From Basidiobolus meristosporus CBS 931.73 (lineage: Eukaryota > Fungi > Basidiobolomycota), in contig MCFE01000095.1 in assembly GCA_002104905.1 (NCBI GenBank), positions 1 through 64,000 of the forward strand: a DNA stretch of 64,000 nucleotides, read 5' to 3'. A program made the translations under genes and the position numbers. Under the pieces are notes generated by a model that saw only the letters and a list, made by a program, of their open reading frames with translations, was not told the DNA's origin and made no database searches. Below, piece after piece: positions 35,083 to 43,904 of this stretch; position 1 is the stretch's first letter, and each line of letters starts with the position of its first letter.

Positions 35083-35511
35083 ATGGATTTCAGTCACCTC
35101 TCCCCCGCTGAACGCTCCCATGTGGAGCAGATATTACACGAGAAGCAGGTGAGACCAGGTTTCTTTTGCCCTCAAAATGGCTATTTTATAACTAGCGTCC
35201 TGAGTAGATGAAAGATTTCATGCGTCTGTACTCCTCTCTCGTCCAAAAGTGCTTCAACCACTGCATCAAGGATTTCACCACGAAGTCACTCACCACAAAA
35301 GAGGTATTCACTACTGCTCGGCCAATGAGAGTTCCGGCGAACTAACTATGTTTAGGATACATGCGTGAACCGCTGCATCGATAAGTTTATGAAGCACAAC
35401 GGCCGAATCGGTCAGCGCTTTGCCGAACAAAACGCAGCCATGATGGCTCAACAGGCACAGCAACAGCAACAGCAACAACAACAGACACCCTCACCATTCC
35501 AATCCATGTGA
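35083..35511 (+). CDS. TIM9: Mitochondrial IMS small Tim chaperone Tim9 (3 exons)
   Basis: EKQ|[32 protein letters not shown]|[26 protein letters not shown]; twin CX3C motif; poly-Q tail. Not in the ORF track. Confidence 0.93.
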
Positions 35512-35774: not shown

Positions 35775-36575
35775 CTAGTTAAGTGAAGAGAGAAAATCGT
35801 TTAGATTCAACGGTTTCTTTTCCTTCTCCTTGCTTTGTGATATAAGCTTTTGCAGGCCTAGCTTTTTACCCTTCTTTTTCTTGGCCGAGCTGACAGTTGG
35901 GCTGTTCCCAGCGCTCAGATTCATGGTCGGCTTGGGGGTGGGGCTATCAAGCGAACGTTTCTGGATGGTCGACTTGTCAGCTAGTGGGGAGTTTAGGTTG
36001 GTTGGCGTTGAAAGCTCGGAGCTAGTTCTCTCGAAATAAGCGGTTGGTGTCTTGGGCGTTATTGTAGTCAAATGAGTTCTATCTGTGCCGTTGAACTGAG
36101 AGATTCTGTGACATTTGTGACAGGTGTAATTGACAACATTCTTGGTTGTGTTAGAGGTCTTGGCAGTGGCGGTTTTGTTGGAGAAGTTTAAGGGGAACAG
36201 TTTCTCTACGCGTTTACTTCATGTGAGAAGTGTTAGACCAAGCGCTTTATGTTTGGGCAAGCTGGTGGAAGATGACTTCACTTACTTTTGACTAGCATTG
36301 TAGAGGTTTCTCTTCGTTTTGAAGGACGAACTGGCCTTTTTCTTCTGATTGTGCTTAACTTGAACTTTACAAGTGACCCCGGGGACAAAGAGATTCCCGC
36401 ATTTGGTACAAAACTGTGATAGGAGATTTTCGGAGAGTGTTACCTCCAAGGAGTCAGAGAGGCTGAGGAATCTTTGCGAATAAAAGGAGGAAAGCTCAGG
36501 TGAGATGGAATGGACGTGGTGTGCGATGGACCACAGGTACTCTAAGCGGGCGGAATTGTCTGCGCTTGTAGCCAT
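35775..36575 (-). CDS. RPR2: RNase P subunit Rpr2/Rpp21 family (2 exons)
   Basis: ARLEYLWSIAH, FCTKCGNLFVPG and second CxxC YTCHKC; Lys-rich tail ending LNDFLSSLN*. Confidence 0.85.
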
Positions 36576-36732: not shown

Positions 36733-38404
36733 CTAGTTGGCAAATCGGGTTTGCCCATTCAAGATGTTGTAGCCATTAATGAAATCCTTTGCTGAGCAGG
36801 CTTTCTTATTCTCCAGCTTAACCATGTCACATTGGATCATGGTGCCCTCTTTGCAGACAACCTGGATGCTGTGAGATGCTCTGTCCAGGATGATGGTTCC
36901 GGGGCAGGCGTCTGATATGTCGGCAGAAGGCTCCACCATCCTGATGTTCATAAGTTGGATGGCTGAGTCGCGGAAGGTAGAAGTCAATGGAAACTAAACA
37001 GTCAAACAATCAGTATAATGCGAATACGGAACAGCATGGTGGATGTGGCGGGCTACCTTGGCTCCAATCGCCCTAAAGCGTCTGTAGATCTCTTCGGCAG
37101 ACTGTTCTTTCCAGTCAATGAGAGCCATCTCCTTGGAAATCTTTGGTGCCAGAGTGACCTTGGAAATATCTTGCGACAAAGCATTCCTCTGGGTAATGCT
37201 AAGGATGAGTATCCGTAGATGAACAATGATGATCACGAAGTGCCGGTACCTTGTTTTCCTCAAAGTTGCTCACGGTTTCGAACAGAGCCTTGGATCCAAC
37301 CTCTCCTAGATACGCCTCCATTTCATGATAAAATGGTTCTTTCGGCATGGGCTATGAACATGCTTCAGTTTCCTCTGACTGGGCCCTCTACTTGAGCTAG
37401 TGAATTGCACTCACCACTTTTACTTGCTTGAGAATACGGCCAGCATCGAAGATTTCTTCGTGCAGCTCCATGATCGAAACCCCGGTTTCCTCGTCACCAT
37501 TCAAAATTGCATACTGGATAGGTGAAGCGCCTCGGTACCTACACACAGAATGGATACATCAGTTTCTGCGAAGATGCCGACCAAATGCAATCGTTCGAAA
37601 CGGACTTGGGCAGTAGTGAGGGATGAACATTCACCGCTCCCTTCGTGAAGCTGCGCAGAATTCGGGATGGTAAGAAATATCCAAACGAAACTACCACACC
37701 TAAGTCAAAAGACCCAGTGGGATCTTGCGTGGGTTTTGGCATCTGATAACGCAAGGGGTTAGCCTAAATAAACGCACACGGTGGAGTGTGCTGAGCAATG
37801 GCTGACCTCCCAGCCCTTCATAGTCTTTGGAGGTGGATGGAACACCGACAGGCCTTCTTCTTCGGCATATATCTTCAGTGGAGCTAGGTTTAACCACTCG
37901 TCAATACCTCATATTTTACAACACATAATTGCACGAATATCACCTTTTTGAATTATCTTGAGCCCTCTTCCCCTACGCTGGTCCGGAGGAGTAACAACGT
38001 CCAAACTTTTGATAAAACCATCTGGAGTTTTCTCTAAGGTTGAAGCAAACTGTATTAGGGAAGAACGACGCTTCCATGCGCGGCTTTCGCCAAACCTTAC
38101 TTTTGTATTCCACTAAACGCTTCAAGGAGGCTAACGAAAAGTTGTCTGTTCCGAAGAAGAGAATGCGAAGTCCCTGGTTTTCTACCTAAGTAGCAGATAA
38201 GTTTAGTTGGATCGGGCTTTCAAACAGGAACCTCGAGTGCCGTTGGTTATGCAATGGAAAGGAGGAGAACGCGCCAACCTTGCTAGTGCAGAAAGTGCGT
38301 ACACCAGCAACCCGGGGAAAGCTCCTGGTGCGGAAAAAGTTGCTTGTGAGGCTTGAGAGGAACGGGGGCCTTGTATTCAGGCGGAGCAATAAGGAGCTTC
38401 CCAT
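36733..38404 (-). CDS. FMT1: Mitochondrial methionyl-tRNA formyltransferase (multi-exon)
   Basis: Arg/Ser-rich presequence; [31 protein letters not shown]|[28 protein letters not shown]. Confidence 0.93.
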
Positions 38405-38620: not shown

Positions 38621-40640
38621 ATGGATCACCCAGATCAAAAGACCAAGGCTTCTTCGAAGCCAGAAACCGAGTATGCTGCGCCAAAACATCCACCCAACTC
38701 TCACAACTTCGTCCCACTGCCACAAAAAAAGAAAAAGAGTGGCAAAAACAAGGCCAACCAAGCCCCGAAGCCGCTGAATCGTCGACAAAAGATTGAGAAA
38801 TCCAATCTAGAGCTCAAGCGTCAAATGGAAATAACGATCATGCATTGGCAAGAGAAGTTGTTCGCCCCGGGAGTCAACCCTGAGTTACTTGCTGAAGCGG
38901 TAGGAAGTCCTGTTTGGGTTTTCTTGGAACTAGTTTCTTGCCTGCGAGTCAAGTGGTTTAACATCCCTTTTGGAAAAGGCTAGATTCTTCCGGCCTGTCC
39001 ATTTCGAAGAGATCGTTGAGGAGAGGAATTCGGAGTTTCTTTGCGGATATCCTCTATGCTCACAGCCTTGCCAGGTGAATTTTCCCCATCCGCAGTAATT
39101 CCTTCATGGGGATTTGCTCACACTTTTGTAGGATATCAAAGGGAAATATCATATCTCGTTAGAGGAACGTAAGCTGTATGATATGACGGAGTTGAGATCT
39201 TATTGCAGCGGTCTGTGCATGACCGCAGCCAAATTCTATCTCTCGCAGTTGTCAGATGAGGCGGTTTATTTGAGGGATTTGGAGAGGTATCGGGTGTCAT
39301 TGATATCCATAGGAACAACCAGGCACTGAACCTATTTCTGATTTATTACAGCTGGGGAAATGTCAAGGTAATTCCTTTGGGACATGATGCAAGGTACGGA
39401 CTGTTTCCTTTGGTCGCATGGGTTAAGTCTTTGTTGTTGAAAATACCTTTGTTGTAGCTCCGTCAACCTTCCACAGAGAATGAGCGAGGGCTTGGGGCAA
39501 GAGTTACTGTCGAATTATGTGAAAAGTATGATCGGAACACTTCAACTGCCTCAGGATGGCCTTGTGATCAAGGAAAACAATCCATCCGAGCAAGAGAAGA
39601 ATCTCCTGGCTCAAAATTTACACCTGAATGGAGCAAATTTTGATGCTGTGGACGGCTTTTCTATTCAGACAACCGGAGACAGACAGACTCCCTCGACCGA
39701 TATTCTTCCTAAGGCGAAGGCTTCCGTTTCCATTGACCCTGATGTGACTGAGCACAACACAAGTATCGATAGCTTCTTCGAGCAAGCTGACTTGGCCCGA
39801 CAACTCGCAGAAATGGAATTAAACGACAATACAAATGTAGAGCAAAGTAGGTGAAGCGTTATATAGAAGGTTTTTGCTGATTCTCACCCCTGCTTGTCGT
39901 TACTAGAATCCACATCGAGAAAGCCCAAGAAATCCAGCAAGGCAAAGAAACCCAAACCTACAATGCAGCTCTCCCTGTTCGGAAAACTGTGGACATTTTT
40001 GGACAAATGCGTCACAACAGACACTCGCCAATACATGAAGAGTTTGAGAACTGAAGTGCCATTTTCGATGTGCAATCTGGTTGCCGATACCGACGAAGAA
40101 CATCGCAATCTACTCCGACAAAACATGTTGAGCGAGAAGATGATCTCCACGTAAGTTGCGACTATTTGAATGGTTAAAGTGGCCACTGTTTCTTACCTTC
40201 GCCTTCGACTGCGATGCAAACGCCAGACTCTCGGCACTCCGTGCAGGTAAGTGATGCATCTTCATCATCACCCGATTTCGTTTAATTAACCGGGATTCAA
40301 TAGAATATCGTATAACCACCATCGTTGAAAACGAGCTCATTGGGCTCGTGGGGACGCTCGTTCTCGACGAATCAATGGTTGTATTAGATCCGGCTGAGGA
40401 TATACTTCTCTGCACAATCTTTTTGGATGCGTAAGTTATACTTCATTATGGATCCTCAATTGCACCAACTAATCGTCCGTTGCCATCAGAATCTCAAGAT
40501 ATTTCCCCTCACTCGATCGCGAGATGACGGAGGCCTCGTCGAGCATCTTTGGGTTGCTCGAGCCGCTCGGCGTCAACCGAGACAAACTGAATATCTTGAC
40601 GCAGATGATCACCGGAGAAGAGGTCAAGTTGAATAAGTGA
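38621..40640 (+). CDS. RTR1: RNA polymerase II CTD phosphatase Rtr1/RPAP2 (multi-exon)
   Basis: FEEIVEERNSEFLCGYPLC, KGKYHISL, YCSGLC zinc-binding motifs; exact 3' exon boundaries approximate. Confidence 0.88.
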
Positions 40641-41217: not shown

Positions 41218-42315
41218 CTATCGGACAATGGCTAAAAACGCTTCCATCGTGTAGTGGGCATCATTTCCTGGGGAGGTAGAGGTGTGAATAAACCGCAGTG
41301 ATCCTTAGGCAGTAACGACCCACTTACCGGCATTGTGTAAATACTTGTGCTCAATTCCAAACTCACTCAAGATACTGGAGAGTTTTCGCTTCTGCTCAAC
41401 CTTGGTTAGCGCCATGTAGAGACTAGATGTATCAAAAGTTTCGATGGGGTCGGACAGCTTGGCGCCCATGTTCCTTAAATACTGCAGGTCGTTCTTCACA
41501 TCATGGCCAACCAGGATGGGTGGAGAGCTCATTTCCCAATCCGCCTGCAGCTGGCTCACGGTATTCAGCAACGAGGTGCACACTGATTTTCCAAACGCAA
41601 ACCGATCCTTGTTGTCGGCCACGTATTTTCCATTGCGTAGGTGATAGTTCTCCTTTACAATATAATGCTTATCCACGAACAGCCCCTTGACCGGGTTGTA
41701 TATGGTCCAACCAACCTCGGTGATAAACGTGTGATTCGCTTCGTAAGACTCGATGTCGATCGCGAAAAAGATGTATTTCTTTTGGGCCACGAACTTTCGA
41801 GCCTGTCTTAGAGAATGTAGAGTGAGGCGTTCCCGCTCTTTTCTTTCGACCATCTTCTTGTGTCTTGTGAGGTCCTTCAGTACGCGATAGTAGGTGGGGC
41901 GGCTGTCAATTTCGATCTTTTCCACGTCTTTCCACGCTTCCATCAACCGGACCGGCGGTAGCACTCTATCTATCAAGGACTCTATCTCCTTCTTCAATCT
42001 CAAATACGTAGGGGTAGATATAAGTATATACCGCAGAGAATCTTTCCGGCTGGTGCCTGGTTGAGAAAACAAAACGCTAGTTGTTAGGGTGATTCCGGTC
42101 AAAACAATGGAAACAACTGTTCGCATACCCAAGTAGAAGGTTCCAAAGGCTCCATTGGTATAGAATTCGGGGATCTTGAGTCGTTGCACCACCACTTTCT
42201 TGGCAGTGGTATCTGCTTTGAAGGCTCTGGACCATGTGCTTTCCAGGAAATCTAGTCTGTAGAGCACCGGCTCATCCTCTGTCTCGCTATCGCTAAGGAA
42301 CGCTCTTGCCAACAT
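41218..42315 (-). CDS. Gfd2/YDR514C/QIP-like DEDDh 3'-5' exonuclease (2 exons)
   Basis: ExoI FFAIDIES, ITEVGW, HYIVKEN..LRNGKYV, ExoII LVGHDVKNDLQYL, DTSSLY, ExoIII LHNAG|NDAHYTMEAF. Confidence 0.88.
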
Positions 42316-42557
42316 GGTGGTGACAGCCTTCACTCAAGACAAGAGTAGGTGTGGGACATGGTAAATTCATTTTTATCTGATACTCCCGCGCGTAAACGTG
42401 TATAAAAAAATCGACTGGATTTTTCTTTTTGCTTTCAGTGTGGTTATATTATGACGATTGATCTGAAAAAAAATAGTGTTACGCGATTTAAATCGTCCAC
42501 TACAGTAACCAGCTTGTATATCGCCTTCGAAACACCCATTTTCTCTTGCGTTCCCCT

Positions 42558-43001
42558 ATGGATCTCGAAGCGAACACGAGAAGGGACAGACTTGCCAAGC
42601 TCGAACAGGAGGTAGGCTGAATTCTCCATGCTTCCGGGCTCGTTTCTAACCGACTTGTATCGTTTCAGCTTCAGGAGATCAACATCCTGAATGGCGAACT
42701 TTCTACCTTGAGACCCAAAAGTGTGAGTATACCTTAGCTTGCTTCAGCCCTCCTCTCACTGGGATATTAACTCTCAGGTAGCGTGTGTATGAGAAATGGT
42801 CTTCCACAAGCAACCTTTACTTCTTGGCAGACAAACGAGCCAACGTCACCTCAAACAAGAAAAGTTAGTAGCCAGTTGTGTTGTTCTTTTGGCTGGGGAT
42901 TTGTGCGTTGACTGTTGCTGTTTCTGTTAGAGCAAGAGATACAATTGACCAACCAGATAAAACAATTGAAGGAAGACATAGCCAAGCTGGAAAAACACTG
43001 A
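42558..43001 (+). CDS. ASDURF: ASDURF-like beta-prefoldin microprotein, 86 aa, 4 exons (42558-42611, 42669-42722, 42782-42863, 42931-43001)
   Basis: Spliced product MDLEANTRRDRLAKLEQELQEINILNGELSTLRPKSRVYEKWSSTSNLYFLADKRANVTSNKKKQEIQLTNQIKQLKEDIAKLEKH. All introns GT-AG. Core resembles recalled human ASDURF [27 protein letters not shown]. Confidence 0.78.
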
Positions 43002-43334
43002 TGCGCTCCGGACGATTCCTCTGGCTCACATCGCTTACTGAAAGCACTCTGTACTCTATAGCCCCTTCTAACCAAGCATGCTCCCCTACAAAGAAGTGAC
43101 ACTAGCGTAGTGAATGGCTGCACCGTGCCCCTTTCCCAACTGAATAAGATGGTTTTTGCCCAGAAAATCTAGTAAAAAGTAGAGCCCAGCTTCCCAGTGT
43201 TTGCGTTTGTGTCGGTCAATCGGGTGTGCATGACACTGTGGTGCGGTCCAAAAGCCCGTACAACGGAAATCCTCGCAAAATGAAAGATGAAGAATGGTTT
43301 ATTAATGAGCAAATCGAGCCAGTATCTGGAGCAT

Positions 43335-43904
43335 TTATTCATCCTTAACAATGTTGCCCTTCTCGGAAACATAGATACCATCCAGGAACTTACGGATATC
43401 CTTGTTCTTGGCAAGGGTGGATTGCTGGATGGAGGCGGCGGATTGGGAAACGTTCTCCAGCGAGTTACCACTGAGGATGATCTCATCCTTTTGGCTCTCA
43501 GAGTGCTTGATGGTGACTCCCTCCAACATGGGCACACGGCGAATGACCTTCTCACCCAAGAAGTTACGGATCTCGACAATCTTGCTGTCATCGGAAATGT
43601 TGACGTTGATGGGGAAATGGGCATATACGAAGCGCATCTTGTATTCGAAGCCCTTGGTGACACCGGTGATCATGTTCTTGATGAGGGAGGAGATGGTACG
43701 AAGGCAGGCAACGTGTTTACGAGCACCGTGCCAGACCACCAAGCGGACCTTTTTGGCGCTAATCTTTTTGATATCCATGTTAACGTGGTGGAAATCCTTG
43801 GAAAGGGTGCCACGGGGTCCCTTAACACGGACAACACGAGACTTGATATCTACAGTCACTCCCTCGGGGATGGTAAGCTCTTCCTCCTTGTAAATATCCT
43901 TCAT
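43335..43904 (-). CDS. RPL9: 60S ribosomal protein L9 (uL6)
   Basis: [58 protein letters not shown]. Confidence 0.98.

Follow-up and report, generated by a model that had tools for sequence, protein, structure and literature searches.

Human ASDURF (also ASNSD1-SEP; L0R819, Pfam PF21975), a 96-aa protein that serves as the beta-type subunit in the PAQosome's prefoldin-like module, is the product of an upstream open reading frame (uORF) of ASNSD1, and its coding sequence spans four exons (bioRxiv 10.1101/2023.05.04.539399). The Arabidopsis counterpart, At1g49245, is a stand-alone gene, and its product co-purifies with URI, UXT, PDRG1, PFD2 and PFD6 (bioRxiv 10.1101/2023.12.13.571423, PMC10893143). 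The only species in which ASDURF is known to assemble into a prefoldin-like hexamer, together with URI1, UXT, PDRG1, PFDN2 and PFDN6, are human and Arabidopsis. Budding yeast, the only fungus discussed in the reviews consulted, is described there as having Bud27/URI alone and no prefoldin-like complex (bioRxiv 10.1101/2023.12.13.571423, PMC10893143, and others). A fungal ASDURF is not described in the literature that we searched by full text. In a window of 64,000 nt from the genome of Basidiobolus meristosporus CBS 931.73 we examined a small gene at 42558-43001, which we read, with moderate confidence from its sequence, as a monocistronic four-exon nuclear gene for a fungal ASDURF-type beta-prefoldin-like subunit.

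Like human ASDURF, the Basidiobolus protein is short (86 aa, compared with 96 aa), has a helix-connector-helix layout and is encoded in four coding exons. It differs from the human protein in lacking an N-terminal extension of ~25 residues (model positions 1-26) and in scoring 20-22 bits against PF21975, where the cut-off is 27; moreover, its gene stands alone and is monocistronic rather than being a uORF of ASNSD1, which is the vertebrate arrangement and is not required in plants. The resemblance to At1g49245, which is annotated as a 'Prefoldin chaperone subunit family protein', is that both are stand-alone genes for small beta-prefoldin-like proteins, and in the Atlas the closest clusters to the Basidiobolus protein are short ones, mainly from plants, that carry a mixed PF01920/PF21975 signal. 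However, the plant protein is backed by AP-MS with UXT and URI, whereas the Basidiobolus protein is known from its sequence and is likened to it by description. With the canonical subunits PFD1/2/4/6 (Gim6/4/3/1; PF01920) the Basidiobolus protein shares a superfamily and a presumed topology, the Prefoldin_2 model aligning over residues 9-85, but it reaches only 19-23 bits compared with a cut-off of 27.6 and is 20-40 residues shorter. Its connecting segment presumably lacks the glycine turn of canonical beta-prefoldins and is, we assume, longer than theirs.

The coding sequence lies entirely on the forward strand and, translated exon by exon, gives an 86-aa product from four exons joined across three GT-AG introns. 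Exon 1 (42558..42611) carries the ATG and encodes 18 aa that open the N-terminal helix; Basidiobolus ranarum has an aligned ATG, while the flank upstream of it is only 42% identical and has indels. Intron 1 (42612..42668; 57 nt, GTAGGC...CAG, phase 0) contains an in-frame stop and is 58% identical to its B. ranarum counterpart, with one indel of 15 columns. Exon 2 (42669..42722) encodes another 18 aa, 15 of them the same in B. ranarum, which complete the N-terminal helix and enter the connecting segment. Intron 2 (42723..42781; 59 nt, GTGAGT...TAG, phase 0) held the sole ambiguous splice choice, and this is settled by B. ranarum, in which only the TAG acceptor is present without an upstream CAG, so that the acceptor is fixed at 42781. 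Exon 3 (42782..42863), comprising 27 codons and one base, covers the presumed beta-hairpin (RVYEKW...LYFLADK), runs into the C-terminal helix and is the most conserved part of the gene, with 24/27 aa and 83% of bases the same in B. ranarum. Intron 3 (42864..42930; 67 nt, GTTAGT...TAG, phase 1) is 55% identical between the species, with indels, and exon 4 (42931..43001) supplies the two bases that finish a split AAG codon, followed by 22 aa of C-terminal coiled-coil helix (17/22 the same in B. ranarum) and a TGA stop that falls at the matching place in both species. A YTRAY-like branch motif is found shortly upstream of the acceptor in all three introns.

These exon translations agree with the preliminary description of the locus, which had proposed four exons and GT-AG introns yielding 86 aa, and, joined, they are identical to a public protein, ORX99584.1 (UniProt A0A1Y1YPS6; P0126 hereafter), annotated as 'hypothetical protein K493DRAFT_348463' of B. 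meristosporus CBS 931.73. The same description had called the gene hidden from the ORF track. This is correct for naive ORF lists, since the mechanical list shows only fragments of 24-28 aa, and the longest stop-free stretches in the window at exons 3 and 4 are 28 and 29 aa; it is not correct for the GenBank annotation, because an 86-aa gene with precisely these limits, 42558-43001, is already part of assembly GCA_002104905.1 (contig MCFE01000095.1), where no Pfam hit is recorded for it.

The gene model was tested by comparison of two species, the ortholog being reached through the divergent DEDDh_C exonuclease neighbor. On B. ranarum contig JASJQH010009156.1 (locus L129), an independently annotated 86-aa gene lies in a syntenic position between RPL9 and the DEDDh exonuclease; its product, KAK9680934.1 (P0125 hereafter), is also a hypothetical protein. 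Synteny based on RPL9 was uninformative, as five other RPL9 loci in B. meristosporus and B. ranarum have other neighbors or a contig edge, and the small gene is absent from them. When aligned as DNA, the two genes agree in start and stop codon and in where all three introns lie, each bounded by GT..AG. Identity is 75% in the exons, which align without a gap, as compared with 54% in the introns, with 22 gap columns, and 42-47% in the flanks. The 64 exon differences are distributed over the three codon positions as 10, 11 and 43 (chi-square p = 7e-8), 34 codons having synonymous changes only and 19 having replacements, and pN/pS is 0.12, with synonymous sites saturated. Taken together, the gapless exons, the third-position bias, the low pN/pS and the kept splice sites indicate, at the level of sequence comparison, that the small gene is genuine and evolves under purifying selection.

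In B. ranarum, exon 3 stays open for ten further codons into the intron, giving a 37-aa stop-free stretch (L129:1257-1367:-), and an exhaustive protein search with this stretch returned one protein, P0125; the query in this case was at the level of an exon and too short to be expected to reach distant relatives. Full-length searches used the public proteins P0125 and P0126, and a word search of proteins with P0125 recovered P0125 and P0126 alone, with no relative outside Basidiobolus.

Gene calls and the ORF list bear out the earlier claim that the gene stands alone, is followed by no ASNSD1, and has a convergent RPL9 as its next neighbor, the identity of which we confirmed. Upstream, an intergenic stretch (42316..42557) is shared with the divergent DEDDh_C exonuclease gene (41218-42315, reverse strand) and is presumed to be a bidirectional promoter; the same divergent pair is present at L129 of B. 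ranarum. Downstream, a spacer of 333 nt (43002..43334) separates the small gene from RPL9 (43335-43904, reverse strand). Both 3' UTRs must fit into this interval, which is too small to accommodate an ASNSD1 ORF as well. Over 10 kb to the left and to the right of the small gene, the gene calls include none with an asparagine-synthase domain.

At the level of structure, the two coiled-coil helices that had been proposed for the protein are backed both by a heptad count, in which 62% of a/d positions are hydrophobic as compared with 10-17% elsewhere, and by an AlphaFold2 model (monomer, two-sequence alignment, mean pLDDT 73), which places helices at residues 3-31 and 45-85, with a loop of low confidence between them. 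The model has no beta-hairpin: pLDDT falls under 50 at residues 37-42, and helix takes the place of the second presumed strand. In length, the 86 aa agree with the roughly 80-100 aa over which the beta-prefoldin architecture of ASDURF extends. Fold searches (Foldseek PDB, ESM Atlas shape and VIA) returned generic helical hairpins, among which prefoldins were tied with unrelated chains. We consider the fold evidence to be neutral. Conservation between the species is highest in the non-helical connecting segment rather than in the heptads, as would be expected if the hairpin were an assembly interface.

Pfam, which includes a dedicated ASDURF model (PF21975), gave matches to the same two families for both orthologs. 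For P0126, ASNSD1-SEP (PF21975) was first at E 6.5e-4 (20.2 bits; residues 15-80 on model positions 27-86 of 96), followed by Prefoldin_2 (PF01920) at E 1.2e-3 (19.2 bits; residues 11-85 on 20-90 of 106). For P0125 the order was reversed, with Prefoldin_2 at E 1e-4 (22.7 bits; residues 9-85 on 18-90 of 106) and ASNSD1-SEP at E 1.8e-4 (22.0 bits; residues 14-85 on 26-91 of 96). These two families belong to one superfamily and cover nearly the full length of both proteins; the E-values are significant, but all four scores are below the gathering cut-offs (27 bits for PF21975 and 27.6 for PF01920), neither protein reaches either threshold, and the two models tie. The next unrelated Pfam family stands at E 0.37 for P0125, and for P0126 the coiled-coil family TolA_bind_tri, likewise unrelated, follows closely at E 0.004. 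Searches of Pfam with exons 3 and 4 singly gave nothing relevant, a search of the PDB with exon 3 gave chance matches only, and when metagenomes were scanned for the hairpin motif with a degenerate pattern of 24 letters, each of the 120 loci obtained proved on inspection to be a chance or bacterial match. In the Atlas feature search, the best match (0.90, 204/256 features) was an 85-aa eukaryotic cluster carrying PF01920 or PF21975, and the ten best named matches were all in the prefoldin clan; scores of 0.9, according to the Atlas documentation, also arise for 4-10% of shuffled proteins. Language-model look-alikes comprised beta-prefoldins of archaea and, from eukaryotes, short clusters of ASDURF type.

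From these matches, the 86-aa protein very probably belongs to the prefoldin superfamily, and orthology to ASDURF in particular is probable. The preliminary description had gone further in naming the gene a monocistronic fungal ortholog of ASDURF. Its stand-alone organization and beta-prefoldin kinship hold up, whereas orthology can be called probable only, given that the Pfam scores are sub-threshold; the profile check that it had proposed came out in the same mixed way, PF21975 being the top family for P0126 and the second for P0125, yet below threshold and tied with Prefoldin_2. Because of these sub-threshold scores and this tie, the choice between ASDURF and another beta-prefoldin rests on indirect arguments, and we file the protein as ASDURF-like and not as a confirmed ASDURF member. 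A canonical PFDN1/2/4/6 was not the best hit: none of the solved prefoldin (PFDN/Gim) chains from human, yeast or archaea was matched at E <= 10, either by P0125 alone or by a two-sequence profile, which argues against an ortholog of canonical PFD1/2/4/6.

One could envision instead a beta-prefoldin that has diverged and become shorter without being an ortholog of ASDURF, whether of PFD1/Gim6 type, PDRG1-like or a Basidiobolus-specific duplicate; its place of work would be the canonical hexamer, from which CCT receives actin and tubulin. Prefoldin_2 does score equally with ASNSD1-SEP and is the top family for P0125, archaeal beta-prefoldin clusters rank first to third in Atlas feature searches, and the genome is rich in duplicated genes, RPL9 with its at least five copies being an example. 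However, one would normally expect a fungal ortholog of a canonical PFD to match solved prefoldin chains, and the human, yeast and archaeal chains went unmatched by sequence or profile; the Prefoldin_2 score is far under the level of canonical subunits, and the nearest eukaryotic look-alike clusters are short ASDURF-type proteins of 79-85 aa. Canonical beta-prefoldin subunits are about 105-130 aa long, so that 86 aa is below their usual length. We consider such an origin unlikely, if still worth keeping in mind, and it leaves an ASDURF-type subunit as the reading that we prefer.

It is also conceivable that the protein is a conserved coiled-coil microprotein specific to Basidiobolus and unrelated to prefoldins, its similarity to them reflecting heptad composition and a helix-loop-helix shape. 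This would be in keeping with family scores that are all sub-threshold, with the presence of the coiled-coil families TolA_bind_tri, Nnf1, bZIP_2 and DivIC in the same Pfam lists, with fold searches that yield generic helical hairpins only, with a word search that gave no relative beyond the genus, and with Atlas scores of a height also seen for shuffled proteins. Yet the two top Pfam families are of one superfamily and align end to end over helices and connector in both orthologs, the prefoldin-clan matches of P0125 stand ~3000-fold above the next family, and conservation peaks in the non-helical connector (24/27 aa in exon 3) and not in the heptads, and we regard a microprotein without prefoldin ancestry as improbable. 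That the locus is non-functional, a fortuitous splice model or an artefact of annotation, could be suspected from the shortness of the product and from the want of a Pfam hit in its public annotation, but it is scarcely credible in view of the gapless exons, of the third-position bias and low pN/pS set against saturated synonymous change, and of the start, stop and splice sites all kept in an independently annotated second species; the comparison between species effectively refutes it.

In our reading, the two heptad-patterned helices of the protein (about residues 3-31 and 55-85) are linked by the strongly conserved segment at about 37-53, the part that in prefoldins forms a hairpin. By analogy, an ASDURF-type subunit would contribute this hairpin to the double beta-barrel of a prefoldin-like hetero-hexamer with URI/Bud27, UXT, PDRG1, PFD2 and PFD6, and its coiled coil would provide one of the six tentacles. 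Such a complex may then act with R2TP/Hsp90 and assist, as the complex is described to do in human and Arabidopsis, in the assembly of RNA polymerase and of other multi-subunit complexes.

If Basidiobolus does carry a conserved subunit of ASDURF type, this would point to a prefoldin-like module that fungi had ancestrally and that yeasts have lost. By a tentative extension, which we hold at slightly less than even confidence, Basidiobolus, and by implication other early-diverging fungi, would keep a complete URI-UXT-PDRG1-ASDURF module of which budding yeast has lost all but Bud27, and, taken with the plant data, ASDURF would be an ancestral stand-alone gene that became an ASNSD1 uORF only on the animal lineage. 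The last of these points is not entirely ours. Because Arabidopsis ASDURF stands alone, a stand-alone gene as the older state and a derived uORF arrangement in vertebrates were already implied by the work on that plant, and the suggestion, made when the locus was first described, that vertebrates captured an independent gene is not new. The evolutionary gain is for that reason incremental, and what is new is the probable fungal member. If the complete module is indeed kept, Basidiobolus would offer a fungal system for study of the prefoldin-like complex. Two hypothetical proteins (ORX99584.1 and KAK9680934.1) would gain a functional name if the assignment to ASDURF is true.

The surroundings of the small gene are an ordinary neighborhood of housekeeping-type genes. 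Beyond the DEDDh exonuclease, ~2 kb from the small gene, lies a gene for RPAP2/Rtr1 (RNA polymerase II-associated protein 2; 38621-40640, forward strand), preceded by genes for a methionyl-tRNA formyltransferase-like protein (36733-38404, reverse strand), an Rpr2 RNase P subunit (35775-36575, reverse strand) and a Tim10/DDP zinc-finger protein (35083-35445, forward strand). Linkage of the DEDDh exonuclease with RPAP2 recurs in B. ranarum (L128 4671-6215); RPAP2, like the prefoldin-like module, has to do with the biogenesis of RNA polymerase II, perhaps by coincidence. B. ranarum has three DEDDh_C exonuclease genes (at L128, L129 and L130), 53-60% identical to that of the window, and the 86-aa gene adjoins the L129 copy only. 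At L128 the sequence begins ~1 kb upstream of the exonuclease copy, and the exons match nothing there.

RPL9 is present in at least five copies in B. meristosporus, on distinct contigs, with 85-92% aa identity to the copy in the window and mostly differing neighbors, and such multiplicity fits large-scale duplication in this genome. Among the RPL9 loci L122-L127, the cyclin-RPL9 pair of the window recurs at L122 only. The paralog at L124 (4001-4626) takes up 626 nt for 189 aa and has no direct translation, which indicates that it bears an intron, whereas the copy in the window is intronless.
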